A DNA stretch of 64,000 bases from Schmidtea polychroa (Eukaryota). Location: positions 155,124,001 to 155,188,000 of the forward strand of contig CM097885.1 of assembly GCA_044892525.1 (NCBI GenBank). The letters are read 5' to 3'. The notes beneath the pieces were generated by a model that saw only the letters and a list, made by a program, of their open reading frames with translations, was not told where the DNA came from and ran no database searches. This document shows positions 1,241 to 64,000 of this stretch, piece after piece. How positions within the stretch are numbered: the stretch's first letter is position 1; each line of letters opens with the position of its first letter. The translations under genes and the position numbers were made by a program.

Positions 1241-1639
1241 ATTCCAGTGGGGTTATAACCATGAACTGGTGGTTTGACGACTTTGTGACATTGGCAAGAA
1301 AGATTACCTTTTCTTTAAGTTTAATATACCGCTATATGCAATTACATACTGATGGTAATGACACACTCTCTATGAAGACAACGAGAAAAGGGTGTTGAGG
1401 ATAATGATAATAATCCTGGAGGTGATAGTACTATTAAGGCAAAATAGAATTCTTAAGGATTTCAATACCCGTAAGGTAAGTATAAAGACTTGTAATTAAT
1501 ACATCATTGAACGTGATTAGATTATCTTTAAAATCGAACATAATTATGAATAATATCAATAAAATCTAATAACAATAGTTAATATTGAGCATATTGAATA
1601 ATAGTTTGTGCAATTAGCCGACTACTTGATAACTTTTGT

Positions 1640-2000
1640 GATAAATTGAGTCTGGGATCTTTCCCGTTTAGCTGTTCCTAATGATGTATTTCCTATAGAA
1701 TATTTGAGTGTGTAATTTAGATGTGTCGTTTACCGGAAGGTCGAATTAATTAAAATTTTCCTACTTTCCCGATTCAACTGAATACGGTACGATAGGCCTT
1801 ATTGTAATATGTTTCCCGCGATTACTTACCCGCATTTTATTTCGTCCGCATAGTCCCTGTGACTATGTTTACTACCTGGATGGATTTACCGCCCTACTCC
1901 TGGTTAAAAACCATTTGTTCGTGGCGACCTTCCGGTTAAAAAATTGAAATTTAGTGCATGTGAGGTCGTAGACCCGTATAGTGCATGTGAAATAATTAGT
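1640..2000 (-). ncRNA. Conserved structured block A (putative cis-acting RNA), copy 1
   Basis: Direct repeat of 15920-16280. Stem CATAGTC/GACTATG (1849-1867) is invariant with a variable loop; a compensatory T-A to C-G change is seen in CCGATT..AAT(A)CGG (1769-1787). Strand inferred from the upstream TATA box. Confidence 0.5.
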
Positions 2001-2108: not shown

Positions 2109-2216
2109 AATAATAATGCAAAACAAATAAAAATGAAATTAATCAACAGTCCTTACTTTCAGTGTTGTCCAAAATTTCGGTAAAAAAAATTTTTGGCATA
2201 CAAGAATATCTGAATT

Positions 2217-2263
2217 GTGACGAAAATGCGTCGGTATATATACCTATTTTGTACACGTGTATG
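2217..2263 (-). promoter_or_regulatory. Putative Pol II promoter of family I element
   Basis: Minus strand ACACGTG..GGTATATATA..TTTTCGTCAC, homologous to 17224-17270 (ACACGTC..CTATATAAA..TTTCGTCAC). Confidence 0.5.
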
Positions 2264-2863
2264 TATTGATGCATTAAAACAAACTCGAATTCTTTTTATT
2301 CCAGAACTTTCTATTTTGTAATTTTGATATTTTTAATGGCGATTTTTGCGTCATAATTTTTATTTTTATTTTTAAAATTTTATTTCCTAAATATTTTTTG
2401 CTAATTTTTCCTCCATGATGGATTTGGAACGGTTCCAGAACATTCCATATTACTTTTAATTCAATTTTTATTTTTAACTGATATTCTACGAATTTCTTTT
2501 TAAGAAATTTTATTTTTAATACTAATTTATTTATTTTCTACATTTTATTGTTTAAGGTAGCTTTTATGATGGTCATCGCCATTTTTATGGAATGTTCTGG
2601 GTTTTTCGGGAATTTTTTGCTATTTTTACCATCTTTTAAGTTATTCGAGTTTGTTTTTTGTAACTCTGTGTTTATTTGGCTATTTTGAGTTAGATTTTGC
2701 ATAACTTCTTGTTTTTGTATAATTTTATTTAATTTCTGTGTTTTAGGTTTTGTTGTTTTCTCCTTTAATTACTATTGGTTATTTGGTGTAGTTTTTAATA
2801 TTTAACTATACTTTTTGCTTTTTACATGTTGTGTACCTACGCATTTCAGTCACAATTAGAAGT

Positions 2864-2893
2864 TTGGGTCTAGAAATCAGTTCTAGCCCAACA
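2864..2893. repeat. Terminal hairpin of family I element
   Basis: TTGGGTCTAGAA-ATCAG-TTCTAGCCCAACA, near-identical to 17315-17344. Confidence 0.7.
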
Positions 2894-4849
2894 AAAGTAA
2901 CGAGAAACGTGGAGTTGAACTACTCCATGTCATGGTGTGAGGTGCCTTCGGGAGCTCAGCCGGTGGACATGGAGTTTTTCAATCACGCAGCTAGATTGGG
3001 CCGAAATGTGAAGGCTTCTTCACGGGTCCAATTGCTGAAGGTGCGACTAAATTATCACAATGGGATATTGTTCAAGGAATAACAGGCAGACAATGATTTC
3101 ACAGAGATGGCCGTATGAACGGAGGGATTTTCGAGAATTCGCACAGTGATTGAGGGCGTCGCATTATTCTTTCATCAAGTCGTTTTCGTAAAGCTTACGC
3201 CTATCGAAAATTGAAATCCAGACAATGATTTAGTAAATTTCGTCAAAGGTAACGTCATCTCATAGTGCACTTCATCTGGAAACATGGTTTTATCAAATTG
3301 ATTATTACAACGTCTATTTTCCGAACTCAGTAAAACTAATTTCGTATGAAATTCCGTTATCACACATCCAATGTCCTTTAGTCTGTCCAGATTGCAAGTC
3401 ATGTTCCAAAAGTTTTCTAAAACTGTAACTATCTCAAAACTATAAAATGTAAGAGTCTACGAAAATCCTTCTAATATTATACTCCAAAATTATTATAAAA
3501 ATTTAATCATTTATAAACAGATAAAATACCAAAATTCCATCTAATAATATTTATTGTTACAAATGAGAACTAGGCTTTCACTTTGTCTACCCGAATTATT
3601 GAACGTATAACACTTGAGGGAAAGTTGCGAATGGCTAAGAGCAGGTTCCATCGAAGCGATATTTATTTTCGAAAACAACAACTCGACATCACGTCCGTAC
3701 AGCATATTGAATACATCGAGATAGGATCAAAATTGCAAGAAGCATAGTAGCCTGCCAAACGAATAAATTCCAACAGTATAATAAGAGAGCTGAACGTTAG
3801 AAAATTTCTTGTCGTTGGCTTCCATCGATCGTTTAGATAGTCAGAAAAAACCCCAGTAATAATGACGAAAACGAGAGAATCCATGATGAGAGATCACCGT
3901 AGCATAGATCAACGATTTTCTGAGACTAGTCATACGGTGAGAGTAGATTATGTGAGTAACCGGTTAGCGATAAAAAACATATTGAATAAGATAACCTCAC
4001 GGAATTTGCAGTGAAACGATCAGCAGCACGTTGACAGAGTAGGATACACGCGACAGATAGACATGCATGTCATGTAACCGACATTGAGAATACACACACG
4101 AGGAAGATAAGGATCTTCAACCAAAATACCGATTCTGCCATCTGATATAACGACATGAATTTTTCACAAGTCAATAACAGACAAGTGGTAGTGAATTGGC
4201 AGTTGCCTCGAGAGAAATGAAATCCATGTGTCCATTCCGCGCATGTTACTAAGATAGGAGTTGAGTAATATTGCAGTGCAAACTGATTAGATAATCCATA
4301 GTCGATATTTTAAGGCGTAAAAAATTCACCAAGCTCATGTACAGAATAATTCACTAATTAATCATCTCGAATGCTTAAAGTAACATAAGATTTAGGTGCA
4401 AAAATTCCCTCTAGAAATGGTAGCCATCGAGCGTAATAAATGATTTACCATTTTTAAAATGAATTATGATAACGGGGGGTAATAACATTCCTATTCAAGA
4501 TCGTTCTAATATTACGATTTCCTGATTGTATTAAATGGTATAAATTATATCGACCAACCGGTATCAGAAATGACAAGAAGATGGTTAGGATTTGTAAAGG
4601 TACCCATGAACCTGTATTAATCGAATTGCATTCGTCAAATCAGTATAGTTTGGTTGAGTAAAAATTTTTATCCGTCAAACTAGTATTATTTAATTGAATC
4701 AAGTAATTTTGTAAATAATTTAAATCGACGTGTAAGGAGATTCATTTTTGTTTATCGGCCGAATATCCACGAGCAGTCGATTATTCGTATTCCACGTATT
4801 TCTTCAACCATACATATATTACGTCTTAACCTTATTCTTTATAGCGAGC

Positions 4850-5599
4850 ATGATACCAGCTACCAAACCCGCGTTACGTCCGTGCTTCTCTTGCGCGGAT
4901 AAAAACGTCATTATCAAAGATCTGCAAACCCAGATTGGACGTTACAAAAGGAAGATAGACGAGCTGGAAGGGACATGGTTTAGTCCCGCTCGGATGAAGG
5001 AGACCCAGAAGAAGCTCTACCGGAGCGAGCACTGTCGAGATGCTTTGATCGCTGAAAGTCGCTCCCAGAGGAGCTTGATCAAGGAGCAGTCCGAAGCACT
5101 GCATAAAGTTTATCTGCAAGCAACTACCACCCGGAAGATAGTAAAAATCCCGATCAAAGACGCCGACGAACTCTTTCCGGCGCACCATGATATTTCGTCA
5201 AAATTGTCGTCTCCTGCCAAGAAGTCCTGCAAGGAATGCGTAGAGACCCAGCTCTCACCCAAACAGCCAGATATCATTTTCATGGGTACAAGTCAGGTAT
5301 CCCTGGTGCTCGCCTCTACGTCTAAGGCGATTCCGACCAACACAGCAACATCCAAACCGAAACGTCGGCAAATGTCTAGGGCTGAACGAAAAAGAAAACA
5401 ACGAGAACGGATGGTTGCCAAGTCCAATATACCCCTATCGAACCTCGTAGATGTAGTCAACGTTCCTTCGGTAACAGTAGTCCCCACATCTGAAGTGACT
5501 GGGCGAATTATCTCTGCCGCCGGAATCACTTGGGAAGAGAACGCTTCCGAGTTTTTCGACCTCGAAGAGCTGTTAGCCGCCACTGAGTGGGAGAAATGA
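4850..5599 (+). CDS. ORF-X copy 1: unknown ~249-aa protein (CxxC, coiled coil, CxxC, basic NLS-like tract, acidic-hydrophobic C-terminus)
   Basis: First ATG at 4850 within ORF 4748..5599. About three-quarters identical by eye to 8292..9059 over the N-terminal ~150 aa, with many synonymous differences. Confidence 0.75.
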   Translation: MIPATKPALRPCFSCADKNVIIKDLQTQIGRYKRKIDELEGTWFSPARMKETQKKLYRSEHCRDALIAESRSQRSLIKEQSEALHKVYLQATTTRKIVKIPIKDADELFPAHHDISSKLSSPAKKSCKECVETQLSPKQPDIIFMGTSQVSLVLASTSKAIPTNTATSKPKRRQMSRAERKRKQRERMVAKSNIPLSNLVDVVNVPSVTVVPTSEVTGRIISAAGITWEENASEFFDLEELLAATEWEK

Positions 5600-7728: not shown

Positions 7729-8291
7729 TGTTGCGGGTATCTACTCGGACGACCCCCTTTTAGTACAGCTTTTAGTCTAGAGGATGAATGCCCACATCGA
7801 TTACGCTCGTCCTTATTTTTGTCATCGCCGAGCAGGACCCGTACATAACCTACACTCCAACATAGCACCCGTGAATCGCTTCACGTTGGAACTGTGCTAT
7901 GCCGGCGAGACGCCAGTAAGCAGGTGAGCCACCTCCTTCGGACTACTCCTTACTGAGGCCTCGACTTCCTAACCCTGACTGCCGATAGAAGGACTTACGT
8001 CTAATCATTCCGTCGCCCCATCGCAATGTTTCTAGTTGGGATTGCCAACTGACTGATGCTCCTCGTTTTCTGCGACTCTCAATGCTATTCACCAATTTCA
8101 TATCAACTGTCTTAAGATAAAACAAAACACGTATGCAGACGAAAATGGTTTATTGTTAGAATTATTATACAAATATATCGAAAACTTATACAACAAAATT
8201 CACAAGAACAGGAAAAAACACAAGGATAGAAAATGATATCAGAAGATGTTCAGGTCTCTCTAGAGGATGAGGCCATTTTACGGGGAAGTTC

Positions 8292-9059
8292 TCATTTTCC
8301 CCACTCCGAGTCGGCGAGTAACTCGTCTAAATCAAAAAATTCGGCGGCGTTTTCTTCCCATGTCACCCCGGCGGCGGAGATGACTCGCCCTGAGATTCCG
8401 GTGGTTAGATCGACTACGGTTGGGTTGCTGTCGCTGTCGACTGGAGTGACGGTCGATGGTATAATCTGTTTGATGGAAGCCCGCTCTCGTTGCTTTCGTT
8501 TACGTTCGGCGCGTGACAGCTGCCGACGTTTAGGTTTTGAAGCTGCTGGTGTTTGCACGGTTGATGAAGATGCGATGTTTGACTTGCTAGTCCCGGTAAA
8601 TACAATATCTGGACCTCTGGGAGAAAGCTCGGTCTCCACGCACTCACGGCAAGACTTCCCGAATGGAGATGAAGACCCGACAGAGGTATCGTGGTGCGCT
8701 GGGAAAAGATTACTGGCTTCACTAATTGGGATCTTTGCGATTTTCCTAGTGGTTGCTGCTTGGACGTATAATTTATGCAGCGCCTCCGACTGCTCTTTTA
8801 TTAAGCTTCTCTGCGCCCGACTCTCGGAAATTAGCGCATCACGACAGTGCTCGCTTCGGTATAACCTCTTCTGAGTCTCTTTCATCTGAGTGGGACTAAA
8901 CCATGTCCCCTCTAACTCGTCTATCTTTCTTTTGTACTTTCCGATTTGGGCCTGCAGATCTCTGATGATTGAATTCTTGTCTGAACAAGAAAAGCAAGGT
9001 CTGAGAATGGTCTTGGAATTGGGTAACATCTTGGGTAGCTGTGAAGAAAAGATGGACAT
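8292..9059 (-). CDS. ORF-X copy 2 (255 aa)
   Basis: Open frame homologous to 4850..5599 (RPCFSC, GTWFSP, RSEHCRDALI, SRAERKRKQRER, WEENA.EFFDL.ELL). Confidence 0.8.
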   Translation of the reverse strand: MSIFSSQLPKMLPNSKTILRPCFSCSDKNSIIRDLQAQIGKYKRKIDELEGTWFSPTQMKETQKRLYRSEHCRDALISESRAQRSLIKEQSEALHKLYVQAATTRKIAKIPISEASNLFPAHHDTSVGSSSPFGKSCRECVETELSPRGPDIVFTGTSKSNIASSSTVQTPAASKPKRRQLSRAERKRKQRERASIKQIIPSTVTPVDSDSNPTVVDLTTGISGRVISAAGVTWEENAAEFFDLDELLADSEWGK

Positions 9060-9349: not shown

Positions 9350-12300
9350 CAGGCCCGACGCTAGAGTATTTGGCGCCCTAGGCAAACTAAAAAAATGGCG
9401 CCTCTAGTCTAGAAACAAACCCAATAATTAAAGAAGTAAATGAAAATAAAATAACTATACTTCATTTATTTATTACACAAAAATATATATAAAAACAAAA
9501 ACCATTTAAAATTTAATTTTTCGTGCTTTTAGTTTAGCGAAATCTTCAAGCAGCAACTTCGTATCTATATCACGCGCCATTTCGTGTTCAATCGACAATA
9601 TTGCTAATCCCACAAGCCGTTCTTGTGACATTGTAGATCTTATATATGTTTTGATCTGTTTAAGCTTCGAAAAGCTTCGTTCACCGCTTGCCACAGAAAC
9701 TGGTAGGGTTAATAAAATTCGCAAAGCAACAAATATATTTGGAACGCTGTCCACTATATTATTTTTACAAATATAATTAAGTACATCTTCCGGCAATAAG
9801 TTTTTTGGAATATGTCTAGCTATAAATATCAATTCGTTCAATAAATCTGTACCATCAATATCTTTAGAATCATCGTGCCGTAAAAAATTTTCAAGTTTAA
9901 GACAATCCTCTAATATTTTCTTTGACGAAATATATTGCAAATTATGTATGTTGTATAGAAATCCAAATGTTGAATTTATCGTTGACATTTGGGTGAATCT
10001 TTGCTCAACAGATTTTTAAGCTCTATCCAAAACTGCGAAGTAAAAGCTGATCTTAAATTTTTCTTTTGGGTTCTGAATGGGCTCATCGTTGGCTTCATAT
10101 TCGAACTGTTTTTTTTGTTTTCTGATACGCTGAGTTTGTTTAAAGATTGGGGAAATTTCTGATTCTTCAGCAAGTTCTCGCGCATCTACCAATATTCTTT
10201 CAAAACCTTCATCATTTCGGGAGTTGAATAGAAATTTTTGGTATCTTCTAGTAGCTTCATAGCATCTTGAATATTAATTTTCTCAGATTGAAGTTGTTTG
10301 CTTGTAATATTTATGTTGAAAAGAATATCATACCAGATAATAACAGAAACTACAAACTCGAAATTCGAAATAGCTTTAGCAAGGCCCTGTGCTTCTATAC
10401 GTGAAGTATTACCAGAAACTCCTGTTTGAGAAGTATCTTGAAAAATATCAATAAGTGCAGCAATAACTTTACTTAGCTGATAGCGTAGAGGTTTAAGGGC
10501 ATCGATTCGGCTCTCCCATCTTGTATCGCTCAATGGCTTCACTGTCAAGTTTGAAGCATGACGTTTTAAAACTTCCCATCGACGTGTTGAAGCGGCAAAA
10601 TAGACATATATTCGTTGCACTAACATAAAAAATGATGTAGCATCTAAACAACAGCTTACAGCGTCATTAACAACCAGATTCAAAGAATGCGCAGAACAAG
10701 GAACAAATAGTGCTCGTGGATTTAGATTCAGAATTCGCCGTTGCACGCCATTTTCTTTGCCTTTCATATTGCTACCATTATCGTATCCTTGGCCACGCAA
10801 GTTCTCAATAGGTAATGACATATCTGCTAACATCTGAACGATTTCATCGGTCATACCAGCACCAGTTGTATCTGTTAGTTTCACAAATCCCAAAAAATGT
10901 TCTCTTATGCATATGGGATCTAAATCACAATTTTCTGTATTTGTATGGACAAAACGAATAATCAACGTCATTTGTTCAGTATGGCTAACGTCTGGTGTGC
11001 AATCCAGGATTATTGAAAAATATTTAGCCATGGAAATCGATTTTAAAATTTTTGTTTTAATACTCTTAGATAAAAGTTGTATTAACTCATTCTGAATATC
11101 TTTTCCCAAATAATGAACTTGTGTTTCATTGTTCTTTATTCTGCGAAGATGCTCACCCATAATTGGATCAAAAGAGGCCAAATATTCTACAAAGCTAAGG
11201 AAGTTTCCATTTCCAGGAGAATACAATTTTTCATTGCTTCCGCGAAATGCAATATTTTGCGTAGCAAGCACTTTAACTAGACCTATAAGACGCTCTAAGA
11301 CTTGTTGCCAGTGTCTCTCTTCTTGTTTTATGAGACGCAAATTATCCTGGTCAATAGTTTTATTCTTTTTTAAACGCAATTCTAGCTCCTTCCAAGTTTG
11401 AAAATTAATTAAATGATCCTTATTTTTCTCATGTCTTTCTAAAATTACAGACATATTTTTCCAATCGCTTGATCCTTTATCGGAGAGATGTATTACACGC
11501 TGGTTATTATTAAAAATTTTGCAACAAAAGCAGAAAGCCGAATTAGTTGTTTTGGAATACTGTAGCCAATGACGCCGCATTTCTTCTCCATTTGCAAGTC
11601 TCCTTCTATAAAAATTCATTGAAAATTTTCTATGGCTCTCATTTTGAGGAAAATCAAATTCTTCAATTTGTTCTGGTCCGTGTTCAACCAAAATTTGCCT
11701 CAAACGGCCAGAACGTAAGTCATGTGAATTTAACCAAGTTGCCGGATCACTATAATCAAGACTCGAATTTACGCTTTCTAATATTTCCAAAGTTTCATTA
11801 ATTAAAATTTCTTCAGTGTCTTCTATAGTTTCTAATACAATTTCTTCTATAGGTTCTTCAACAGTTTCTTCAATTGTTTCAACTTCAGTTTCTTCTATAG
11901 TTTCTTCCACATTCGTATGTGGAAACTCAGTCAAAATAGGCACCTCTGCATTTCTAGTTGTAGAGTTCCTATCCATTTGCTCTTCCAAATTGCAGTATAC
12001 TTGTTTTCTCGGAGTCATTTCATTTCGATTTTTATCTTGTGATTGTTGACGACAAATATATTTCAGAAAAGCACCTTCTTGCTTTTTTTCTTCATTTTTC
12101 TTTTCAGCTTTACGTTTTCTATTTTGTGCGCCAGATAATTTTTTTCTATCTGCCATTATGCTACCTCAAGTAAAAATTAATAGAATATAATAGATTTAAT
12201 AATAGGTGTAGAAAAATCCAATATAAATTAAATTACTGTGTTGTATATATGTAAAAATTATACTGGAAGTACGACCGAAATTATATATACTTTAAATAAA

Positions 12301-12901
12301 AAAAATTTGAGCCCTGCACTAATTAAATTTTATTTTTTTTTTCACTTTCTGTTTATTTATTTTTTAACTTTTTTAACATTTACTTTAGTCTTTTAAAACT
12401 TTACTGCATGTGACTTTATTCTTTTAAAATAAAACTAAAAATTATTGCGTAATTTAAAAAAATTTCAGAGCATGCTATATGCTAAATTTTTTTTAAAACC
12501 GCTTTTCAGTTAACTTTTTTGAACTTGCAAAATATTTTTTTAAATCGATTTTCCGTTGTATTTTTTTAAATTTTAAAAGAAATAAGTAATCGGTATCGGA
12601 CTAAAACAACGATGNNNNNNNNNNNNNNNNNNNNNNNNNNNNNNNNNNNNNNNNNNNNNNNNNNNNNNNNNNNNNNNNNNNNNNNNNNNNNNNNNNNNNN
12701 NNNNNNNNNNNNNNNNNNNNNNNNNNNNNNNNNNNNNNNNNNNNNNNNNNNNNNNNNNNNNNNNNNNNNNATCAATATAAAGATAGAAAGTTTATAAAAT
12801 ATTTAATTTACTTGATAAAAAAAGCAGAACTATTTGGCGCCCGCTTGTAAATCGGCGCCCTAGGCTGCTGCCGACGTCGCCTATGCCTAAAACCGGGCCT
12901 G
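9350..12901 (-). mobile_element. hAT transposon (ZMYM1-like/DUF4371 type) inserted in family II copy 2
   Basis: TIR CAGGCCCG / CGGGCCTG; perfect 8-bp TSD GTTGAATC (9342-9349, 12902-12909). Confidence 0.95.
9506..12156 (-). pseudogene. hAT transposase, disrupted
   Basis: TTF-type zinc finger (FCFCCKIF), IILDCTPDVSH, GQGYDNG, CSAHSLNL, DTRWESR, SGERSFSKL. Frameshifts at ~10230 and ~10110 and an in-frame stop near 10020. Confidence 0.9.
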
Positions 12902-14149
12902 GTTGAATCAAATTACTGACTTATCCCAAAACAAATAATTTCGATGTGTAGATCTTATACATAGGTCGATTAATTTTAGATTAATTATTTAAGGTAAATA
13001 GGAATCTGTAAATTGCTCTTGAATAGTTTATGTATGATAAACGGGAATTTATTAATTAATTTTCAATTATTTATTTATTATAAACGAAAATTTGTCAAAA
13101 TTGAATAAATAAATTAATTAATCCCACTAAGGGGACTCAAAAGGTCTGTCTGACCGCTGACTATTATTTCCGACCGGTGGGAATCTAGTGGCTGTCCGCG
13201 GTTTAATTTGATAACTGAAAATTCCAGCTGACACGTCCGGTCTGATTTTCTACGAGTAATAGTCAGTGTAAATCTACACACTGCGATTAACCGCTGTAGT
13301 GAGTCTAAAACGTGTGACGCCTGAAAATTTTCTCTCACGTACTTATCTTCAATCATAATCACTGACTGGTGTTCTCAGTCTGGAATCTATATCGTGTGCC
13401 TATGTAATCCTGATTGACCAGCTGCGTAAATGCTCAAACTCCACTTCACACGATGTTGGCATGCTATCTCTCACGGAAATTTTGGAAAATTACGATTCCT
13501 TGCATTGCTAATGTTGGATATAATTTGCTCCGAGGATGGATTATGCGACCACTCAAATGCTATTTATCAATCCGTTCCCGACGATTTGGAAATTTATTGC
13601 CTATCTCATCGCTGGGTTTTTCAACTCAATGAAATGCAGATATTTTACATTTAATAAGTAAGAATTATCATGCTAAATTGTTTTTTAGAAAATATATTTT
13701 TCCGGACTAGAGTTATTTGCATTGTACGTTTAAAAATTATTTGAAACTAATCATTTTATGTAATTCTAAAAATTATTTGAAACTAATCATTTTATGTAAT
13801 TCCCTACAACTACACCTTTAAGAGAACATACAGATGATGAAAATAACAGTTACGAAAGGTCGTAGGCTGAAAATTAGTAGGAATAAATTTCGAGGGTAAA
13901 ACATGAACACCGATGGTATGTCACATATAGTGATACTAATGTTTGAACGGTTTTGACAACACAAAAAAACTTGCATAGATCGTTGGGATGATAGAGAAAA
14001 TTTGAGCTTGGTAAAAACGATATCGTGATACGATAGTGCGACACCCTCAATCACTGCGCGAATATATAAAAACTCTCTGATTCATTTATACATCTCTGTT
14101 TTCGATCGCTGTATGACTACCAATTTTCTAGCAAAATTTTTCTATAGAC

Positions 14150-14300
14150 TTTAGTCGCACCTTCAGCGACGGACCCGTGAGGAAGCCCCCACATTACGGC
14201 CCGAATCAGCTGCGTGATTGAAAAACCCCATGTCCACCGGCTGAGCTCCCGAAGGCACCTCACACCATGACATGGAGTATCTCAACGCCACGTTTCTCGA
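14150..14300 (-). ncRNA. Conserved UUCG-capped hairpin C, copy 2 (copy 1 at 2900-3050)
   Basis: CTCCATGTC...C-TTCG-G...GACATGG(A/G)G; the 52 nt are identical between copies except one change that keeps a G-U pair. Confidence 0.5.
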
Positions 14301-16350
14301 AAATTTAAGTAGCATTAAATAATAATTCATAAAAATCAACAATTCATAAAAATCAATAATTCCTAGAAATCAATAATTCATAGTCAATCATTTATTGTTA
14401 AATAACTAAATCATTTAATTAAGCAAAGTATTTGAATCAAGCGAAAAGAAAACAAGTTCTTTAAATTAAAAATATAATTAGTTCATACGCATAACTATTA
14501 CTTAAAAGTTCAACATATAAAATCAAAAGATCCTTACCGAGTGTTTAATATGAGTATATAGGCTGAGTCGAAAAAGTACTGGGTCGAATTAATTAATGCT
14601 CGAATATTGTATAGATTCAACTGAAATTTCTTGGATCCTGAAATAGTCCTCGTAAGTTGCTCTGAGTTGGTTGTTTAATTGTGAGTTGCTGTTTCTTCGG
14701 CAAATTTATCTATTGAAGTTGTTAGATTAACAGTAATCATTATGATTTTAATGCCTGCTTATATATTAATTTTTTGTTTGCGCGGACCAATCAGAATTGA
14801 GTACCGCTTAATTTTACTACTTTAATTTATTTTTCTTGTTTTTGAGTTATTTCTTCCTATTTTCTTTATTTTTATTGTGTTTTTATTTATTTTCCTTAAT
14901 TTCCTTATTATCTACTATATTTTACGTTATTTTTCGTCATTCTATTGTCCTATTTTAATTGTTCTTATTTTTATATTTTTTGTTTTAATTCTTATTTTCT
15001 AATTATTGCTTTTTCTTATATTCTATTTTATTTTATTCGTCAATCTATTTATTTTATTTTTTTATTTTACTTTAGTTAAGTTTAACCTGATTTCCCAGCT
15101 ACCCTTCGGCTCAGCCCAACACTTAAGAGAATCTAGTATATATAATTTATATATATAATCATAAGGTTTTTGTTATTGCTACACCTCTTAGGGGTGGGAC
15201 AGTTGTACCTGAAAGTCTATATTTTCCTTGGTTTTGATTTATGCTTTATGTTGAAATAATATTTATGCTTGCAAGTTATCCATGTAGCCTTGTTTTAGTT
15301 ATGATGGAGAACACTTTTACGGTAGATCGATTTTGTGGATCCCTACATCATATCTAGAGAAAATTTATGCCTGTAAAATATCATTTCAACAACTTTTGAG
15401 ACGAATGAAAAGAACTTTCAATGGAAATTTTTTTTGTTATGAATCTATATATTGTAATTACATAACATTTGTGTCGACAATTTACTTTTTATAGCTATTC
15501 AACTTAGTATAGAATAATGTGAAGATGTTGCCCGAATTTATAAGTTATAGATATAATATTAGTAGTTTATAGATAAAGAAACTTTGTCAATATGTTGACG
15601 GGAATTTTGCGCATACCAGAACCATCTACGATAGAGAAATTTAGTTTGCATCAAAATAGGTTATTTTGTGGGCATCTATAGATATTAGTTCGCTTACCAA
15701 TGCGATTGAGATTATATCATCTTAGGTCCTACTCATCGCATGAACTTTAGGTTGCAATATTCTGACAGGAAATAGTTCAGAATTTTTAAGTCTTTAAATG
15801 CCTTAAAAATCTTTGCGCAGGGATCTCCCTGTTATTTAGAGTTAATTAGTTTCTTAGGTTCACTTTGACTTTATCGTTTAAGAGGGATTCGTTTAGAAAT
15901 TACCAGCTACACTAACATGTTGTATTGTGTGAAATTTGAGTCAGGGGATATTTCCCGTTTATCAGTTACCAATGTTGTGTGCAAAATAGTATAATTTAAG
16001 TGTTATTCTAGATATGTAAGTTAACGAAAAGATCGATTTAATTAAAATTTACCTACTTTCCCGACTACACTGAGTACGGTACGATAGGCCCTATTGTGTT
16101 ATTTACCCGCGATTAGTATCCCAAAAATTGTTTCGTCCGCATAGTCCCTACGACTATGCCAACTACCAAGAAGGATTTATACGCCCTACTTCTGGTTAAA
16201 CACCATTTGTTCGTGGCGACCTCTGGCAGTTGAAATCATTTTAATGCATGTAAGGTCGTGGACCCGTAATCATTGTGATAAAGTGCATAGATGCAGGGTT
16301 GACTTGTATCTCGCTCAAAAATCAATGATAACCGACGATCTCACTCAAAC

Positions 16351-16938
16351 CTACACCTCTATAATCAAATAGAAATAACGAAAACAACGTTTCAATAATT
16401 TATAATTCACAATGAAATCGTCCTTACTTACAATCCCAGAAAATCTCAAAATCAAAATCAAAATGGAACCTGTATCATTAGCTGCGATGATTTTCTGGAC
16501 TTGAAATTTCTCAATATCTGCCTCATTTGCTGGTGGAGGACCACTCTGTTCAACTTGATTCATAATACTCGTTAGAAAATTGTCGAAACTTTGATCTAAA
16601 AATATGTAATCTGATGAATCGGATCTAAAATCCAGCGGCAGCAATCCACCAAATAAATTTGATATTAGTTGGCCAAAAATACTATTTCTGTTATCAGGAT
16701 CTCTTGGAGTCATAAAAAAGGAACCATCAGTTTCGTTTGTAGTACTTCTATTTTCCATTGAGTTATCACGACTAATATGAAAAGCATTCAAGGCATCATC
16801 ATCATTTTCCATTGAGTTACCATGAATAATTCTTTCAATAAATCCATCATTGCACGTCACACATTTACCATCCTGAGATATGTGAACGTCCCTGTTGCAT
16901 TGAATATCATAGTAATTATCTTTATTAATTGAAGTCAT
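16351..16938 (-). CDS. Intronless RNF126/RNF115-like ORF with degenerate RING
   Basis: N-terminal zinc ribbon YYDIQCNRDV..KCVTCNDGFIE; SDY..LDQSFDNFLTSIMNQVEQSGPPPA; the RING start reads GIVSKDDF instead of CxVCKDD(Y/F), with the later Cys/His ligands missing. Confidence 0.7.
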   Translation of the reverse strand: MTSINKDNYYDIQCNRDVHISQDGKCVTCNDGFIERIIHGNSMENDDDALNAFHISRDNSMENRSTTNETDGSFFMTPRDPDNRNSIFGQLISNLFGGLLPLDFRSDSSDYIFLDQSFDNFLTSIMNQVEQSGPPPANEADIEKFQVQKIIAANDTGSILILILRFSGIVSKDDFIVNYKLLKRCFRYFYLIIEV

Positions 16939-17223
16939 TAAAGAACCAAAATCCGAATATCAATTTTATTAACCTTCGCGCAAATTCAAATTCACAAAAA
17001 CCATTTTTAAATTTAAACAACAATTCTACCAAACTTCCAGAATTCGAAAAACTCCAACCATCCTAAAATCGATACAAATCCAAATCGACACGACAAAACA
17101 CAAAACCTGACTAATAATTCGACACAGTTGTCCGCGTCTGTGTGCGCACACAAATCAAAAACAAAAGCGTAAGAAAGCGCACACAGACACGAGAACCGAT
17201 AATTAACCAGTAAGCATTGAAAA

Positions 17224-17270
17224 GTGACGAAATGTGTTAGTTTATATAGCCTCTGTTTGACGTGTAAGTA
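17224..17270 (-). promoter_or_regulatory. Putative TATA promoter upstream of the RNF126-like ORF
   Basis: CTATATAAA followed ~24 nt later by TCAC; homologous to 2217-2263. Confidence 0.5.
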
Positions 17271-18337
17271 TACATGCGTGTTGTGTACTGACACATTTCG
17301 TCCCATTTCTAACTTTGGGTTTAGAAATCAGTTCTAGCCCAACACCTCTCATCAAAACCAAAAAAGAAAATATGTCAAACATTCAAGAATCTGAAGCCTT
17401 TGTTTTCCTAGCTGTGATATCTCTGTTGATGAGCTTGATCATGAACACCTTCTATTCCATCAAAGAAAATTTCCTCAGATTATTAATTCGCGATTCTAGT
17501 GATTCTCCTGATATAGTTTGTTACGAGAACCGGACTGACCCATCCGTCTTCATTCAAAAGGAGTTAATGAACAAAGTTATTCCAAATAAAGATTCCAATA
17601 CTTTGACATCGCACGTTACTGGAGTCTACATGCCCAAATGCAAGTTCATCAACAATCTCAGTACAATTGCCAGATCAAGAGTCTATGCTTTCCTGTGAAC
17701 ATTGACTGCTGGAGCAAATATTTCCATGATCGCTTTCAATGTCGTTTACAATAAAAACTTTATTCAAATTACTAATTAGTTCATGTCCTTACAATGTGTG
17801 CTGTGTTTATATGTAAAATTATTATTCTGCCACTTTCTCAATTTCTATATAAAAACTTTTAAGTTTTTACACGCATGTAAGTTTGTGTGTTCCTCTACTA
17901 TAACTTAATCATTTTTTTATATTACAACTACTGCCAGTTGGAGTGATGAGCCTTGCAGATAAATAAATTTTCTGATACCGCGTCTTTACACACGACACAC
18001 CTTGAAGGGAATGGAAACCAATAAAAATAAGATAAATTGTGCGGAGCATGAAATGCACATTAACTGTCACCTTTCATTAATTAAAACTCTCTAAGCAAGG
18101 ATCATTTCTGGAAAATAAATTTATTTTGTTTATTTGATCATTTATAAATCAATATCCCTTCACTCGCTCAACACCTATGAAATCAATAACGTCTCCCATA
18201 GGGCATAATTTTGGCTGTTAAGCAGGGTAAGTTATCGAGAATGAGAAGGAATGACGGATGGGATTTTATTTATTTTTGCTTATTTTTGGTTATAGTGACA
18301 GGTCCATCAAAGAGATTTAAACTAAACGCATGATACC

Positions 18338-27638: not shown

Positions 27639-27707
<69 letters not shown>
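27639..27707. repeat. (TA)n microsatellite
   Basis: ~34 TA units. Confidence 0.95.
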
Positions 27708-27709
<2 letters not shown>

Positions 27710-29714: not shown

Positions 29715-30560
29715 AACAAAGACCGACAGGAAACAGATACAGCCGGATTAATGGAATCGAAGATGAAGTGGAAATGGAATCGTGCGTAGAGACAAATGAA
29801 GTTAATTTTAGTAGGACGTACCCAAACAACATGGCTCCACCAGTAGAGGAGATGGTTGGAGCCATATACTAACAGAAAGTGGATAGGGGTAGAAAAGTGG
29901 GAGAATGTGGGAAGGGTAAGTGAGAAAGTATACAGGTTCCTAAGGAGAGAAAGGTTAGAAAAGGAAGTGGAAAGAATTGGAACAATTGAAACAGGACAGG
30001 AGGTAGAAATTGTATATAACAAGCTACAGGGAAGACCTAGTGTAACAGTAATGATGAATGGGGAAATTTTCGAATGTTTATTAGACACCGGAGCACGAAT
30101 AAACGTAATGAGTGTGAACTGTTTTAACAAGTTACGAGGACAACAATTGATGAGAAGCGACGATAAGTTACGATGTGCAAACGAAAGTACGATAGAGACA
30201 ATTGGAAGAACAAAGGTTAAAGTAACTATCGGAGATATTTCTAAGGAAGTTAGATTCATTGTGGCGGAGAAAGTGACACCAGATGTGATTGGAGGAGTAG
30301 AATTACAAGAAGCATTTGGATATAGGCTGGCAAAAAAAGAAAGATATCGAATCTAGTGAAAAAGACAAGAACTATATTTGTAACATTGAAGCAAAATTCG
30401 GCAGACAAATAAAGAATGGAGAAAGATTGATGAGGATAGTAAATTAAAGGAAATAATAACGAACAGTGGAAACGTGTTTATGGCGGATAAATGGGATGTG
30501 GGTCGCACATAAGATAATTACAATAGGTGAACCGATAAACATAAAACCATATCGTCAACC
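29715..30560 (+). mobile_element. Ty3/gypsy gag-protease fragment
   Basis: Aspartic protease CLLDTGARINVMS, later IILGxDF-equivalent VIGGVEL and INIKPYRQP. Confidence 0.85.
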
Positions 30561-33499: not shown

Positions 33500-34760
33500 C
33501 TAAGTATAATCATTGGTCCTGGAATTTTCAATACAAAATCCGACTATCACTAAAAACGCATGGATATTTCTAAGTATTATTAAAGTGGGTCTCCTTGGTT
33601 CTGGGATTTTCAATGCAAAAAGGGGGTATATGATAAAAAGCATACATTTATTTTGACACTTCCTTAGTCCTGCTTCTTCGATCGCTTTTAATACTTCACT
33701 GAGTATTGTATAATGTTTTTCTTTACTATTCGAATAAATCAGAATGTCATCCAAATACACCATTGCTCCATTTATTTTACCTATTACCTTTGTCATCATT
33801 TCCTGGAAAGTACCTGGTGCTGCACCGGCTGTATCTGTTTCCTGTCGGTCATTGTTTCTCTATTGTTTTCTTGTAACTCGACTTTGTATAACATTATTCA
33901 GATCTATGACCATTTCTGTTGCATCTTTTACACCGTATTTCTTGACATAACCTTCCTATATGACCTTTCCCACAACCAAAACATCTTTGCACTTTTTATC
34001 TGGACAATTCCTACTTATATGTCCGCTTCTGTGACACGTCCAGCACTCTATCTTACTTCTTACTGGACATTCTATTTTCGTGTGACCTATTTTGTGGCAT
34101 AGCCAGCACTCTAGTTCTTCTCGTCGCCTGCCTTCTTCTCTTTCATCTTTCTGCTTGTACTGTCTTCTTCTCTGTGGATCCTGATAGACCACTCTTGCAT
34201 AACTTTTCTATGTTTCCTATATCTCCTCTGTGCTTTTTTTCTTCCGCAATATTACTTCTTTCTCAACTTCTTTATTCTCAGCACATACTATCAACATCTT
34301 TGCTGTTATTTTCTCTTTGGTGAATTCTTTGTTCTCAAACAACCTGTCAACAAGGTCCTTCACTTTTTTAAAATATGTTTCAATCTCTTTGCCTCTTCTT
34401 TTATAATTCAATAAACTTTCCATATCCTTTATTACATCTCTTTTGTAATCAAATGCCATTCGTAACCTGGTTTGAAATCCTTCTGCTTTTTTAACTGTCT
34501 TCGCATATTTCTCCAATAGATCCTCGTCGATCATCAATGTAATCAATCTTTCCTGTTCTTTTTTATTGATGCCTTTAGCATCGAAATAAATCTCGCATCT
34601 TCTAATGAATTTTTCCAAGTCATCACCTTGACAGAACACCTTTGGCAATAATCTTTCGGTAATCGCGTCATTGTTTACCGTGTCTACCATATTTGGATTC
34701 TCATCCGTTACAACATTTATATATGTTTGCAAATCACTAAATAATTCCATAAATTTTATA
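33500..34760 (-). mobile_element. Ty3/gypsy gag (two CCHC knuckles) joined to an RT fragment
   Basis: CWLCHKIGHTKIEC and CWTCHRSGHISRNC; MVYLDDILIYS; 33820-33900 is homologous (inverted) to 29660-29750. Confidence 0.85.
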
Positions 34761-40809: not shown

Positions 40810-43067
40810 CAGGGGTGCCCATAAGGTCGATCGCGATCTACCGGTAGATCGCGAGGGATTTTTTAGTAGATCTTCATAAAAAAATATTTTTTATATAAAT
40901 TTAGATTTTATATAAAATTTCTGTTTTATGCTTAAATTTTTGTGTAACAAAGTGAAAAATTTTCTTAAGCTTTTTTGTTAAATTAATTTTGTTTAAAAAT
41001 GCTAAATAAAAAAGCCAAGACTTATCATTATAGCGAAGAAATGGAGAAGGAGTACTTTTTTGTAATGATTAAAGGTAAATGTTGTTGCTTAATTTGTAAA
41101 GCTACTATTTCATTACCAAAAATAGGGAATTTGGAAAGGCATTTCAAGACAATTCATAAGAATTTTGCAGTTGAATATCCACTTGACAGTGAACTACGCA
41201 AGTCTAAAATCATGGAACTGAAAACATGCATTTCTTTTCAACAGTCATTTTTTACGAAGCTAACATCCAAATCAAAGTCAGCTACAGCTGCATCTTTCCG
41301 AGTAAGCTACATTCTGGCAAAAAATAAGAAATCTTTTAGTGATGGAGTAATTGTAAAAGAAGCATTTTTAGAAGCGGCAGAATCATTATTTTGTGATTTT
41401 AAAAATAAATCAGATATAATTTCTGCTATTACTGATATGCAATTGTCCCGTAATAGAGTTACACGGAGAGTCCAAGAAATAAGTACCAATTTAAAAAATC
41501 AGTTAATGTTAGAAATAGGAAATTGTACCGCATTTTCATTGCAAGCAGACGAATCAACTGATGCGGCTGATATTTCGCAGCTTATAATTTTTATTCGAAT
41601 GGTCTTTAAAGATTTTTCTACGAAGGAAGAATTATTAACAATTATACCACTCAAAAGTAAAACTCGAGGTGAGGATATATTTCAGAATTTTAAAGCTTAT
41701 GCCAACAGCATTAAGCTCCAAATTTGTAAGCTTGTATCAATAACAACAGATGGCGCACCAGCTATGACAGGGCGTCACAACGGATTTATAGCATATTGTA
41801 GGAATGATTGTGAATTCCCAGATTTTCTTTCCTACCACTGTATTATTCATCAACAAGCCTTGTGTGCTAAAATTCTGAATATGAGAGATATTATGGAAAT
41901 AACATTCAAAATTGCTAACTCGATTCGTGCAAGAAGTCTTCAGAGACGACTTTTCAAATTACAAATTGAAGAAAGTAATAGCGAAGGTCCTGCTGAATTA
42001 CTGATGCATTCAGATGTAAGGTGGCTAAGTAGAGGAAAATTCTTACAAAGATTTAGAGATTTGCTTTCTGAGATTAAGTTGTTCCTTGCCACAAGAGGTG
42101 ATGAGTTCAAGCAATTGGAAGATGATGTTTGGCTCTTGGATTTGGCATTTTTAGTAGATATTACTGCAATTCTGAATGAATTAAATCTCGACTTACAAGG
42201 TAAGGATAAATTGATATTCGATATGATAAGTTCAATCAATGCATTTATACAAAAGCTTCATTTACTTATTACCAAAATAGAAGACAAAAATTTAAGTTAT
42301 TTTCCAAATACGTTGTCACAATTAAAAGAATCTGAAAATGTCAACTTTAATATTACGAGATATGCGGAACAGATCAAAATTTTGGTTTAAGAGTTCGAGA
42401 GACGTTTTCAAGACTTCAAGAAACTTGAAATTGTGGCTGCATTTATGTCCTTTCCGTTTAATCCAAAAATAAAACCAGAAATTGTTGCAGATTCAATTTC
42501 AACTTTGTTTAAAATGGATATCCCTATACTTGAAATGGAAATAATCACACTTCAAAATGATATCTTCATTAAATCAAGATCTTCCGAACCAAATGTATGG
42601 AAATATCTATCAGAGGATAAATATTCAAACTTGAAAAAATGCTTCGAAAATTTAGTATCATGTTTTGGTTCAACTTATATATGTGAGTCTGCATTTTCAC
42701 ATATGAAAATTATAAAGTCAAAGTACCGAGCAACATTAACAGATGACCATTTGGAATCCAGCCTAAGAAGTTGTCTTAGCACTTATATCCCAAACTACAA
42801 AAATCTAGTGGATTCAACCCAGTGTAGAGCATCAACATCGAAAAGTTCTATATAAAAATAATTTTCATTAAATTTGATTTCCTAAGTTACATTTTTTTAT
42901 AATAAATAGTTATATAGTTTAATTTTCCATATTTTGACATATATTTGTTTTATTGTGATGAATTTATTGCATTGTAGGTAAATATTATGTAAGTATTAAA
43001 AAAGTAGATCGCATACACATTTTGGATGTGAATGTAGCTCTCCTAGAAAAATGAGTGGGCACCCCTG
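40810..43067 (+). mobile_element. hAT transposon (Charlie/SPIN/Buster, GTF2IRD2-like)
   Basis: Perfect 12-bp TIR CAGGGGTGCCCA; perfect 8-bp TSD CTGTATAA (40802-40809, 43068-43075). Confidence 0.97.
40999..42855 (+). pseudogene. hAT transposase with one in-frame stop
   Basis: BED-like CLIC..NLERHFKTIH, DESTD, ITTDGAPAM, HCIIHQQAL, VRWLSRG, STYICESAFS. The two ORFs are in the same frame, separated by TAA at 42388-42390. Confidence 0.92.
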
Positions 43068-48955: not shown

Positions 48956-51900
48956 CAATGGCGGATTTAACATTAAAGAGGCCCGAGGCGCAAAAGAATT
49001 CAAGGGCTTCCTCTCACCCCCCCCTTGGGCAGAAAATTTGAGAAAATAAGTTAAGCATTTAAATATTTTTAAAAAATTTAATGTATAAAAACTTTTAACA
49101 AATTTTATTTTAATTTCAGAAGTACAATCATTATTCGCCCAATATACTTAGTATTTAATACATAATATTTAATACATAATATTTAATACATAATAATAAT
49201 TCAATAATAATACACCTAACCGCGAAAGTTAACCACCTGAGGTGAGTCACCAATTATATGACAATATTAACTTAATTTCATTTATTCTATTTTTCAAAAA
49301 TCATTTTAAGGTAAGTTTTTGAATTGAAGTAATTTTTAGGACTTGAATTTTGATTTTATATAATTATGAGATCATTATTCATCATTTATAATTTATCATT
49401 TATAAATATATTAATAATTAAATTTCAGGTGTTTTTTTAGGAAATTTATGATATTTTATGCATTAATATGGAATTATTTCGCTAAAATGTAAGTTAAATA
49501 TTTTTATATTTATAAATAAATAAAGTAATCATCATACACATTAATTTTTTTAATACATTTAGGGAAAAATCGGCGTACATGAACGAAATAGTTTTTTAAA
49601 TTTTTATAATCTTCTTTCTGCAGCTCATTTTCGATGGCTTTCTTTGACGACAAAATCCAACAAATTATTTCCCTGTTCTTCTGAAATAATTTGTTTTCTG
49701 CCACTTCTTTTTCCTTTTGTAATTTCGGCATATTTCTTATATTTGTAAATTATTGAAATAATTGAATTTTTGGGGATTCCGAGCAATCTTCCAAATTCTT
49801 TATAATTGTCCCCATTTTCAAATGCATTAATAAGCCGAATTTTTTCTATTTCTGTAATTCTTTGAAAATATTAATTTGTTAAAATAATTTATTAAAATTT
49901 ACGATTTGCGATTTTTTTTCTGCAAATTCGAAGTTGTCGAAGGACCTTCTTCAATATTTGAAATGGTACCTTCACGCAAAGAAATATCTGTTATACTGTA
50001 AAATATTTTAATATTTTATATTTTAATGAATAAATCTTACATTGTCAGATCTTCAACTTCGCAAAAAGCCACTGTGTCCTGTGAAATATCTGTAAATCCA
50101 AAGAAATTTTATATTCCAAATTATTTTATAATTAAATCTTACGATGTATCTTCTTTTTTCCCCTAAAGCTCAACGTAGAGCAATCGGAATCTGATTCAAA
50201 AGTTTTTTTGTACATCATTTTTTAAATAATTTAAAAATATTGATATGTTAATTATATGTTAATCAATCTGAATTTCGCATGAAAAACACTTTACTTAATT
50301 TTGTATGTATTTTTCATTATGTGTGCTGTGCTTGTATGCTTTATTATTTTCTCTCACTTTTTAGATTCCTATAATAAATATGTTAAATTTCGCGGCATTA
50401 AATTTCTACACACAGGTAAGTTTGTGTGTTCCTATAATATATATTTATTGATTTTTTTTTAGATTATAGATAATGTTATATTTCGCGGTTAGGTGTAATT
50501 CAAATATATTGCAAACACAAAAAATTAACATATTTATACAGGTCGAATAATTTCAAAATTAATTTGTTTATTTAGTCCATACTCATGGTGGAATTGAAGA
50601 ATGGCTCAAAATCATATAATACCATTTTGTAAACAGCAGATCTAGTAGAAATTGCCGTTTCAATTTTATCACAAATTGCATTGTGTTTCTACTACAAACA
50701 ATTCTTGTCCACCTGGCGTACATTATTTGTATGTGATTCATCGAACTGTATTTTTCGTGTCTTACGTCTTTCTTTATAATTTATATTATCAGTTAGTAAC
50801 GGTTAGCAATGCATTTTCGTACGTGTCTAAACAATTAAATAATTATTTTGCTTCTAATTTAGTCATTAGTTTTTCGTTAACATTTTCGCTAATACTATTA
50901 AGAACTGCTTTAGCAATTTTATAATTTAAACGTAAAGCAGAAACTGCATCAGCTCTTGCAGACCATCTAGTGTAAATAACTTTTTTTATAAGTTTTGAAT
51001 TATTATTGCTAGGTCTATCAACAAGTAGATTCCATCTGTACGTAGACGAAGAAAAAAATGCATAAATGTTTTGTATTAAAACGAAATAATAAACAGCCGT
51101 CGAACAAGTTTCCGCAGCACAATTTCCAATTAAATTTAGGGAGTGACTTGAACATGAAATAAAAGTGGCAGATTAGTTTAAATTCTTAATTCTAGCTTGT
51201 AAACCATTATACTTGCCAACCATATTAGGTGCATTGTCATAACTTTGCCCACGACAATTTTTTAAATCAAATGACAAGTTAGTTAACATTTCAATAATAG
51301 ATATTTGGATTCGTGACTCTTAATTTCCAAAAAGCCAAAAAATCGTTCTTTTGTACATCTCTCTTTGTCAACGTATCTTAATATAAATGTTAATTGATCT
51401 ATATGGCTTACGCCTGGCATAGAATCAATAATTATTGAATAGTACATAGCTTCTTGAACCTCTAAAATTATTTTCTCTTTTACATCAGTTCCCATTAAAT
51501 TAATAAATTCATCACAGGTCGTGTGAGATAAATAAATAACCCTTCCACGTCCAATATTACCATATCTCTCTAAATGATTTTTAAGGAAATCGTCAAACTG
51601 AGCCAAATATTCTATGCATGTTATAAAATTTCTTTATCTATGTGAGTCAACACCTTCTCGGCGTTCTCGAAATGCTATACACAAACTAGCTAACAATTTG
51701 ATTGTTGCCATAATTCTCTTCAAAATTTCTTGCTAATATTTAGGGAATCAATGCGTCCAGTTGTTGATAATTTTTTTTAAACTTCAACATTGGAGAAAAA
51801 TGGTCTTTAGAACATTCATCTTCTTTTAATGCACGATTAATACTTTTCCTGCCATTAAAGCCAGTTGTAAATTAAGTATTAGAACGTATAAAAAGTTTAC

Positions 51901-58677: not shown

Positions 58678-58750
58678 TGACCGAAATGGGATTTGAACCC
58701 ATTGGTATTGGCAATGCAGTCGAGTGCTATTACCACTAAGCTATTAGAGC
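58678..58750 (-). ncRNA. tRNA-like Pol III unit 2 (5' half resembles tRNA-Cys GCA)
   Basis: A box TAGCTTAGTGG, B box GGTTCAAATCC 33 nt away, perfect T-arm ATGGG/CCCAT, partial D-arm, unpaired anticodon stem, ends GGTCA+T8. Confidence 0.65.
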
Positions 58751-63228: not shown

Positions 63229-64000
63229 ATGGTATATGAAGAAAGATTAGCACTTTTAAAAAAATTACAATCTGAACAAGATAAATATAATAAAAAAGAT
63301 ACAACTCAACATGCTGAATCTATAATATTAAATGAGGTAATAACACAACAACAGGGGCCAACAATTAAAGCTATAGAGGGACTTAAAACTATAGAAGCTC
63401 CTCTAACCCCTGAACTTAAAGCTATAGAACCTTCTAAAAAGGAATTATCAAGATTAATGGGTTTAAGAAAACGTAGAAATACTATTGATTTAGAAGAAGA
63501 TGAATTTCTTTCAAGATTAACACCTCTTAAGACTCCAGTTAATTTTAAAATTAATACATCACTAGCTAAATCAATTATACCTACTATAGGTTATGATCCT
63601 AGAGGTTTTCAAACAATAACAATTAATAATCAAAAATTTTATATATATTTAAATTCAAAAAATAATCCAGCGATTATTTCAACAAATACTTTTATGAATA
63701 GAGAGCGTGTAGACATTGAACTTTCAGATGGTTTTCATGGATTAATTTCTGGATATATTCCAGATGGTGTCAAGAATGAAGAATTTGATAAATATTTAAA
63801 CTTAATAAAATTAATAAATGGTAGCCCTAAAGCAAAACATATTCAAGATTTAAAGAAATATTTAAATAAAAATGAAAGGGGTTATGTTGTTACAGAGGGT
63901 AAGGGGATGCCTGAGGCTGCAAACCCAATCAATCTTTTTATTGAATTAAGAAAACTATTAGCAGCTAAAAAGCAGGACATAATAATTTAGATTCTGATAT
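63229..64000 (+). CDS. Polinton PZ-like virion protein, probably frameshifted near 63970 and running off the window
   Basis: NPINLFIELRKLLAAKK, with AGHNN in the adjacent frame (cf. DPNEL..RL.LL.A...AGN); GFHGLISG..DKYLNLI block. Confidence 0.6.

Follow-up and report, generated by a model that had tools for sequence, protein, structure and literature searches.

Two repeat units with shared ends and unrelated interiors in Schmidtea polychroa DNA, one of them enclosing a fragment of an RNF126-type E3-ligase gene

INTRODUCTION

A 64,000-nucleotide stretch of the Schmidtea polychroa genome (GenBank assembly GCA_044892525.1, contig CM097885.1, positions 155,124,001 to 155,188,000 of the forward strand), which we refer to as the window and whose own numbering is used throughout, contains two repeat units of 1.3–1.4 kb that lie in the same orientation, share their ends, and have unrelated interiors, one of which holds a 195-amino-acid (195-aa) open reading frame (ORF) related to the N-terminal part of an RNF126-type E3 ligase. 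The explanation that we tentatively favor, with somewhat less than even confidence, is that the units belong to an unclassified non-autonomous mobile element, or represent its remnants, and that one of them carries a passively acquired gene fragment. Both the mobility of the unit and the lack of function of the 195-aa ORF are properties that we infer in this analysis.

Under this explanation, the two loci would be diverged copies of a single non-coding repeat unit with conserved ends, namely a left-hand block (block L) and a right-hand palindromic module composed of two further blocks (P and A) and closing with a near-terminal hairpin, between which the interior would be free to differ. In the downstream copy (unit 2), part of an RNF126-type E3-ligase gene, namely its 5′ flank and its first ~160 codons, would have taken the place of this interior, or filled it, by copying at the DNA level, and in the upstream copy (unit 1) it would consist of low-complexity filler. 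Template switching, filler-DNA repair, or read-through may have provided the route of capture.

ORGANIZATION OF THE TWO REPEAT UNITS

Self-comparison of the window delimits unit 1 at 1634–2893 and unit 2 at 15925–17344, the latter being the unit that an earlier reading of this DNA (the original prediction) had placed at 15920–17344, and which is thereby confirmed as real and well bounded. Three blocks are common to the units (Table 1): block L, of 345 bp, aligns at 78% identity over 353 columns (E 5e-71); block A, of 67 bp, at 85% identity (E 3e-16); and block P, of ~60 bp, with a local alignment score of 42 (200 shuffles: mean 22.8, maximum 32). No alignable flank is found on either side of the units, the extension of homology leftward of 1634/15925 is not significant, and profile searches built from both copies found no third copy of the shared blocks in the window. 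Block L is separated from block P by 232 bp in unit 1 and by 949 bp in unit 2, these two interiors not being significantly similar to each other, and P, which abuts A in unit 2, is split from it in unit 1 by a 554-bp insert. The picture of shared ends around differing middles that had been put forward previously is thus correct as regards the common blocks and the unrelated interiors, but the variable segment is the one between L and P, and not, as had been proposed, the one between a promoter and block A.

Block L, with a GC content of 0.39 against ~0.31 in the flanks, retains an 8-bp hairpin in both units, the loop of which differs between them. As a coding sequence it was rejected on account of stops in all six frames of both copies, and as a structured RNA on account of the absence of any Rfam family at either gathering or E-value thresholds and of folding z-scores of −0.8 and −2.0. 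Because this non-coding block still aligns at 78%, the interior next to it must have been replaced rather than have drifted.

The same arrangement could have a more local origin, in which no mobile element takes part: a single ancestral segment of host non-coding DNA, with the order L, interior, P, and A, would have been duplicated, at first nearly in tandem, after which insertions and deletions replaced the interiors, and with one of these events part of the E3-ligase gene arrived as a duplicate. We regard this alternative as rather unlikely, while noting that just two copies are present and in the same orientation, that neither target-site duplications nor terminal inverted repeats were detected, and that the 11.4 kb between the units forms one palindromic block, in which a hAT element is nested and which may be bordered by an 8-bp duplication (the eight bases on each side match at six positions, which is weak in A-rich sequence). 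If this palindromic segment is an insertion, the units formerly stood ~1.6 kb apart in tandem orientation, which would be compatible with a local-duplication origin. Such a duplication, however, sits poorly with homology that stops sharply at both unit ends, with no shared spacer sequence, and with an entire interior that cannot be aligned while the neighboring non-coding block L can; in addition, the co-varying arms of the right-hand module, described below, fit the ends of an element better than they fit neutral duplicated DNA.

THE PALINDROMIC END MODULE

The right-hand module, formed by blocks P and A and spanning 126 bp in unit 2, consists in both units of inverted arms of 23–28 nt that bracket a TATA-containing core, the observed score of the arm pairing being reached by none of 500 shuffles. 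The two arms within one unit, 87–88% alike, are closer to each other than to their homologues in the other unit, and at three substitution columns and one indel column the arms agree within each unit while the units differ. This pattern of co-variation points to concerted evolution of the arms, as is seen in the end repeats of transposons. The 35-nt tail that follows the right arm folds into a hairpin of 10–11 bp, the end of which lies 2 nt from the sharp right boundary, and the DNA folding z-scores of the module are −3.65 in unit 2 (17215–17344) and −3.54 in unit 1. A terminal hairpin common to the two copies had been among the features noticed earlier; the left end offers merely a 4-bp stem, and the conserved stems are those of 8 bp inside block L and of 10–11 bp at the right end. 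A third occurrence of the arm motif, at the left end of block L, was suggestive by eye but not significant, and this candidate was dropped.

THE RNF126-TYPE GENE FRAGMENT

A search of 5.8 billion proteins returned a single close relative of the 195-aa ORF of unit 2, a 220-aa protein (P0001; UniParc UPI00060A378E) with 78% identity and an E value of 1e-73. P0001 has the architecture of RNF126 and RNF115 (BCA2), with an N-terminal Zn_ribbon_19 domain (32.8 bits, which passes the cut-off), a PPPA-type motif in the linker, and a C-terminal RING-H2 domain (zf-RING_2, 1.7e-15) that matches the solved RING structures of RLIM and RNF126 (2ect being the RNF126 RING). In contrast, the ORF of unit 2 corresponds to the N-terminal part only, its zinc finger scores 20.2 bits where the Zn_ribbon_19 cut-off is 30.8, and its RING is missing. 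One of the four cysteine ligands of the ribbon is substituted, and two zinc-position cysteines of P0001 are replaced by non-cysteine residues in the retained part. The intronless RNF126/115-like ORF of the original prediction is therefore upheld in its position and its relation to the RNF126 type, but its match to P0001 ends at residue 159 of 220, and the RING is lacking. No relative of the ORF was found among the solved structures of the PDB.

No RING domain is present in any of the six frames of the window, either by a regular-expression pattern or by a tblastn search with P0001 (word size 2), the alignment of which ends at residue 159, and Smith–Waterman comparisons with shuffles detect no residual RING similarity in any frame of the 187-bp spacer that follows the end of homology. 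A hidden RING exon was accordingly rejected, all three approaches having come back empty. The 3′ bound of the homology to P0001 falls in a hexanucleotide microsatellite, beyond which the frame stays open for a further 36 codons, an event with a chance of ~0.07. With the local stop rate of 0.07 per codon, 195 open codons would have a probability of ~7e-7 in random sequence.

A processed retrocopy was rejected, as no poly-A tail was found on the minus strand after the fragment, where only the hexanucleotide microsatellite occurs, and no flanking direct repeats were found; these signs of an independent insertion, a poly-A tail and a target-site duplication of the segment's own, had been named in advance as what would speak against the original prediction, and both are absent. 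In having the 5′ part of a gene together with upstream sequence, in missing the catalytic domain, in having lost ligands, and in bearing no poly-A, the fragment resembles a partial unprocessed pseudogene; unlike the ordinary form of such a pseudogene, it fits precisely between two blocks that are found together again, 14 kb away, with no such fragment. The upstream sequence in question, the 279 bp between the ORF start and block P, cannot be aligned to unit 1 and has no other copy in the window, and it contains a 15-nt inverted repeat (17133–17147/17177–17191) and two short upstream ORFs.

An exhaustive HMMER search adds only distant RNF126-like proteins, such as one from Panonychus citri that is annotated as RNF126-like, and an 86-aa degenerate N-terminal relative (P0002; 50% identity) on a metagenome contig, the latter being consistent with fragments of the same gene being multiplied. 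P0001 and P0002 being the only close relatives among billions of proteins, the subfamily (220 aa) appears to be small and lineage-specific. Judged from its sequence, the 195-aa ORF probably arose when a genuine, lineage-specific E3-ligase gene was copied at the DNA level; it is truncated, degenerate in part, and likely dead. Because it is without the catalytic RING and has lost zinc ligands, we read it as a passenger pseudogene rather than as expressed cargo. A literature search on the capture of RNF126 found nothing specific.

Alternatively, unit 2 might be a native RNF126-type gene locus, now a decayed paralogue, in which block P is the promoter and block L the 3′ flank, and unit 1 would then be a second such locus that has lost its coding region. 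The order of parts on the minus strand would suit a gene, running from the TATA motif in P through a 279-nt leader and the ORF to block L; block P ends in both units ~30 nt downstream of the TATA motif, at the position expected of a start site; and the 187-bp spacer between the end of homology and block L is close in length to the missing coding part (186 nt). This native-locus interpretation is nevertheless clearly improbable, given that unit 1 has no trace of RNF-like sequence and that the spacer shows, as described above, nothing left of a RING; we take the near-equality of the two lengths to be a coincidence.

THE TATA MOTIF AND THE EXPRESSION-SLOT MODEL

The motif TATAWAWR occurs inside the units only twice, at homologous positions in the two copies of block P, and in the minus-strand sense it points into the variable segment, with the shared block ending in both units ~30 nt downstream, where a start site would be expected. 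TATA-like octamers are, however, abundant in the window, which contains 270 of them in 64 kb, or about one per 240–340 bp. Because the octamer is commonplace in such AT-rich DNA, we treat it as a motif with suggestive spacing and not as evidence of a promoter. Of the conserved TATA promoter in the original prediction, what survives is a TATA motif common to both units in block P, the octamer itself being too common to indicate a promoter.

The short hydrophobic ORF of unit 1, in which a second cargo had been seen, does not qualify as a gene. This frame, placed at 1872–2108 in the original prediction, extends over 107 nt of block L and owes its hydrophobic part to an A/T repeat with a period of nine; in unit 2, stops and frame changes interrupt the homologous part, and Pfam returns only sub-threshold noise. 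It thus amounts to A/T low-complexity sequence that overlaps block L, without conservation in unit 2.

These observations bear on a model in which the units are cassette-like elements whose conserved promoter drives a variable slot, the RING-less protein being expressed, for example, as an adaptor or as a dominant-negative form of the ligase. The model would account for the conserved position of the TATA motif, pointing in both units into the variable segment, for the host-derived segment lying in sense orientation, and for an ORF that stays intact across all 195 codons. It is very unlikely all the same, since the slot of unit 1 holds no credible gene, the fragment in unit 2 is devoid of its catalytic domain and of two zinc ligands, two mini-ORFs precede the start codon, and TATA-like octamers are so frequent in the window. 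Highly improbable, in our estimation, is a more ambitious version in which the L…P+A arrangement represents an active, or recently active, small non-autonomous family that has its own TATA promoter at the edge of the palindromic end module and repeatedly exchanges the segment downstream of it, acting as an expression cassette that samples host fragments, here a RING-less adaptor of the RNF126 type. The expression slot for the capture of host sequence that was originally proposed thus retains a repeated unit with one interior that is host-derived and in sense to the TATA motif, but it is left with two units, of which the second cargo is no gene and the first is truncated. As a property of a family, such a slot is not supported, because the evidence amounts to two units, one gene fragment, and a putative TATA motif. 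Interiors that vary passively, as they do in many non-autonomous transposons or old duplications, account for the same data.

An ORF of 108 aa on the plus strand (17372–17698), with a hydrophobic N-terminal stretch and no family match, starts 28 nt past the right end of unit 2. If the palindromic module were a two-way promoter, block A would be the leader of this ORF. No counterpart of it exists beside unit 1, where the palindromic segment stands instead.

RELATION TO KNOWN ELEMENT TYPES

Conserved ends, swappable interiors, a palindromic module that evolves in concert, a near-terminal hairpin, and a gene fragment would together give the units the look of non-autonomous DNA transposons, especially those of rolling-circle types. 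Supporting context for a transposon is provided by the window itself, which is rich in hAT, long terminal repeat (LTR), and Polinton elements.

Among the closest likenesses are the Helentrons and their HINE relatives. These have subterminal inverted repeats with arms of 12–15 nt, the 5′ one lying 2–4 nt from the end and the 3′ one 38–60 nt from the 3′ end, a short palindrome near the 3′ end, and a TT target with T-runs at both boundaries (PMC4067079). The module formed by P and A is laid out similarly to these DINE-1-like elements (Thomas et al. 2014), with one arm at its 5′ edge, the partner 35–57 nt from its 3′ end, and a palindrome after it. An AT-rich or short-tandem-repeat center (as in the insert of unit 1), the lack of a target-site duplication, heterogeneous interiors, and the occasional presence of gene fragments are further points of agreement. 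The arms, however, are of 23–28 nt and not of 12–15 nt, and the module makes up only the right-hand 126 bp of the unit. A short 3′ palindrome is present in both units as the right-end hairpins of Table 1, and subterminal repeats are found if the bounds are set to those of the module (17218 and 17344), but not for the unit as a whole, the left end of block L having no significant match to an arm.

Likeness to gene capture by canonical Helitrons or Pack-MULEs lies in the conserved ends, the unrelated interiors, and the presence in one of these of part of a host gene that was copied as DNA, is truncated, and looks non-functional. The units differ from both in having neither canonical Helitron ends nor the terminal inverted repeats and 9–10-bp duplications of a Pack-MULE. 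With regard to the canonical Helitron palindrome, which has 16–20 nt and lies ~11 nt from the 3′ end, the units carry a hairpin of 10–11 bp that ends 2 nt from the boundary. A solo LTR was examined as well, the ends of the units being TGT…ACA, and was rejected, as the flanking pentamers mismatch in both units and no primer-binding-site-like or polypurine sequence adjoins them.

Several findings weigh against a mobile origin with a dead passenger. At the right boundary, the units show no TT target or T-run of the Helentron kind, ending instead in …AACA followed by C or A, and Ts are found at the left only. No Rep/helicase ORF occurs in the window. A canonical Helitron was rejected, the 5′ TC and 3′ CTRR termini being absent in both orientations, with ends of the form TG…/…ACA and flanking bases that are not A and T. 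A terminal-inverted-repeat transposon, including a miniature inverted-repeat transposable element or a Pack-MULE, was likewise rejected, as the outer ends of L and A are not linked by any inverted repeat and no target-site duplication is present. Only two units are present, both old (78–85% identity), and none was found elsewhere in the collections searched, so that the unit is at most a putative mobile element. Finally, the 195-aa ORF may have decayed recently or may retain some residual function, which we keep in view because its ~160 homologous codons stay open.

Searches for the shared blocks beyond the window gave nothing further: pattern scans found no copies of block L or A in viral contigs or in the contigs of prokaryote genomes, and a metagenome scan with a 19-mer from block L yielded nine chance matches only, in GC-rich bacterial contigs. 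Exact-protein look-ups of the 195-aa ORF, of P0001, and of two other ORFs in the window returned no record.

GENOMIC SETTING

The window has the appearance of AT-rich, transposon-rich animal DNA, with a GC content that ranges from 0.23 to 0.41 and five runs of N, and contains hAT, LTR-type, and Polinton/Maverick-like elements as well as satellites and microsatellites. The features of the two units and of the segment between them are collected in Table 1.

Table 1. Coordinates of the repeat units, their parts, and the intervening palindromic segment
Feature	Positions	Strand	Description
Block L, unit 1	1634–1978		Homologous to block L of unit 2
Membrane-peptide ORF, unit 1	1872–2126	−	84 aa from TTG, 78 aa from ATG at 2108; judged spurious
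Interior, unit 1	1979–2210 (232 bp)		A/T low complexity with a 22-nt GC-rich inverted repeat (2003–2024/2043–2064); unrelated to unit 2 interior
Block P, unit 1	2211–2272		Left arm 2213–2236; TATA-like octamer 2235–2242
Insert, unit 1 only	2273–2826 (554 bp)		GC 0.23; short tandem repeats and nested 15-nt inverted repeats
Block A, unit 1	2827–2893		Right arm 2834–2857; 11-bp hairpin 2864–2891
Large palindromic segment	2901–14299		Adjoins the right side of unit 1; separates unit 1 from unit 2
Outer arms of palindromic segment	2901–3195 (295 bp) and 14006–14299		Inverted copies, 78% identity
Inner arms of palindromic segment	4880–6129 and 7770–8999		Inverted pair, 68–79%
Young hAT element, 3.55 kb	9350–12902		Nested in the palindromic segment; 99% identical to contigs of four public metagenome/sequencing samples (L010–L013)
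Block L, unit 2	15925–16268		Non-coding; 8-bp hairpin 16139–16159, 4-bp near-terminal stem 15945–15956
L-side spacer of interior, unit 2	16269–16455		Unique; matches neither unit 1 nor any other part of the window; the ORF reads into a part of it without homology
195-aa ORF, unit 2	16351–16938	−	Probable RNF126-type E3-ligase gene fragment; homologous part 16456–16938 = residues 1–159 of P0001
279 bp upstream of the ORF start, unit 2	16939–17217	−	Unique; may be the fragment's own 5′ flank or leader
Block P, unit 2	17218–17277		Left palindrome arm 17219–17241 and 45-nt core; TATA-like octamer 17241–17248 (minus-strand sense)
Block A, unit 2	17279–17344		Right arm 17287–17309, then 10-bp hairpin 17315–17342

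Each inner arm of the palindromic segment encodes an ORF of 255–283 aa of unknown function (4748–5599 on the plus strand and 8292–9059 on the minus strand). The hAT copy nested in the segment has an assembly gap inside it and, relative to an intact 883-aa transposase (P0022), one frameshift and one in-frame stop.

The remainder of the window holds several further elements. A second hAT-type transposase region, with a DUF4371 and a hAT dimerization domain and read in two ORFs, is accompanied by a further diverged hAT remnant (40999–42855, 50903–51732). A retroelement aspartyl-protease fragment and a possible gag-like ORF (29856–30356, 34217–34750) are surrounded by short inverted-repeat pairs of 97–98% identity (23681–23771/31988–32078 and 29680–29746/33825–33891), an arrangement that suggests a rearranged LTR-type element. 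From 59051 to the end of the window at 64000, and continuing past it, there is a Polinton/Maverick-like gene set with a double-jelly-roll capsid protein split over two ORFs (one interruption), an integrase ORF that also bears a parvovirus-type phospholipase-A2-like domain, a poxvirus-A32-like packaging ATPase, and two ORFs without assignment. Just upstream of this set, Rfam gives a weak tRNA-like match (32.4 bits, 58678–58750), for which ARAGORN makes no call. The simple and tandem repeats comprise a 97-bp satellite in three copies (92–100% identity), an AAT-rich microsatellite field, a family of 76–103-bp repeats, and a long (TA)n run (1–291, 304–676, 826–1189, 27639–27708).

IMPLICATIONS

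For annotation, the immediate consequence is that the 195-aa ORF should not be named an RNF126 gene. The data do not support a new mechanism, and gene fragments inside repeats are well known; two features are specific to the present case, the small, lineage-restricted gene family of the RNF126 type and the co-varying palindromic end module. This module, with its co-varying arms, is the most distinctive feature of the units and could help to define a family. If the units do derive from a mobile element, they would provide a further example of an unclassified animal element, possibly of the rolling-circle type, that carries a gene fragment, and would be useful in the cataloguing of such elements.

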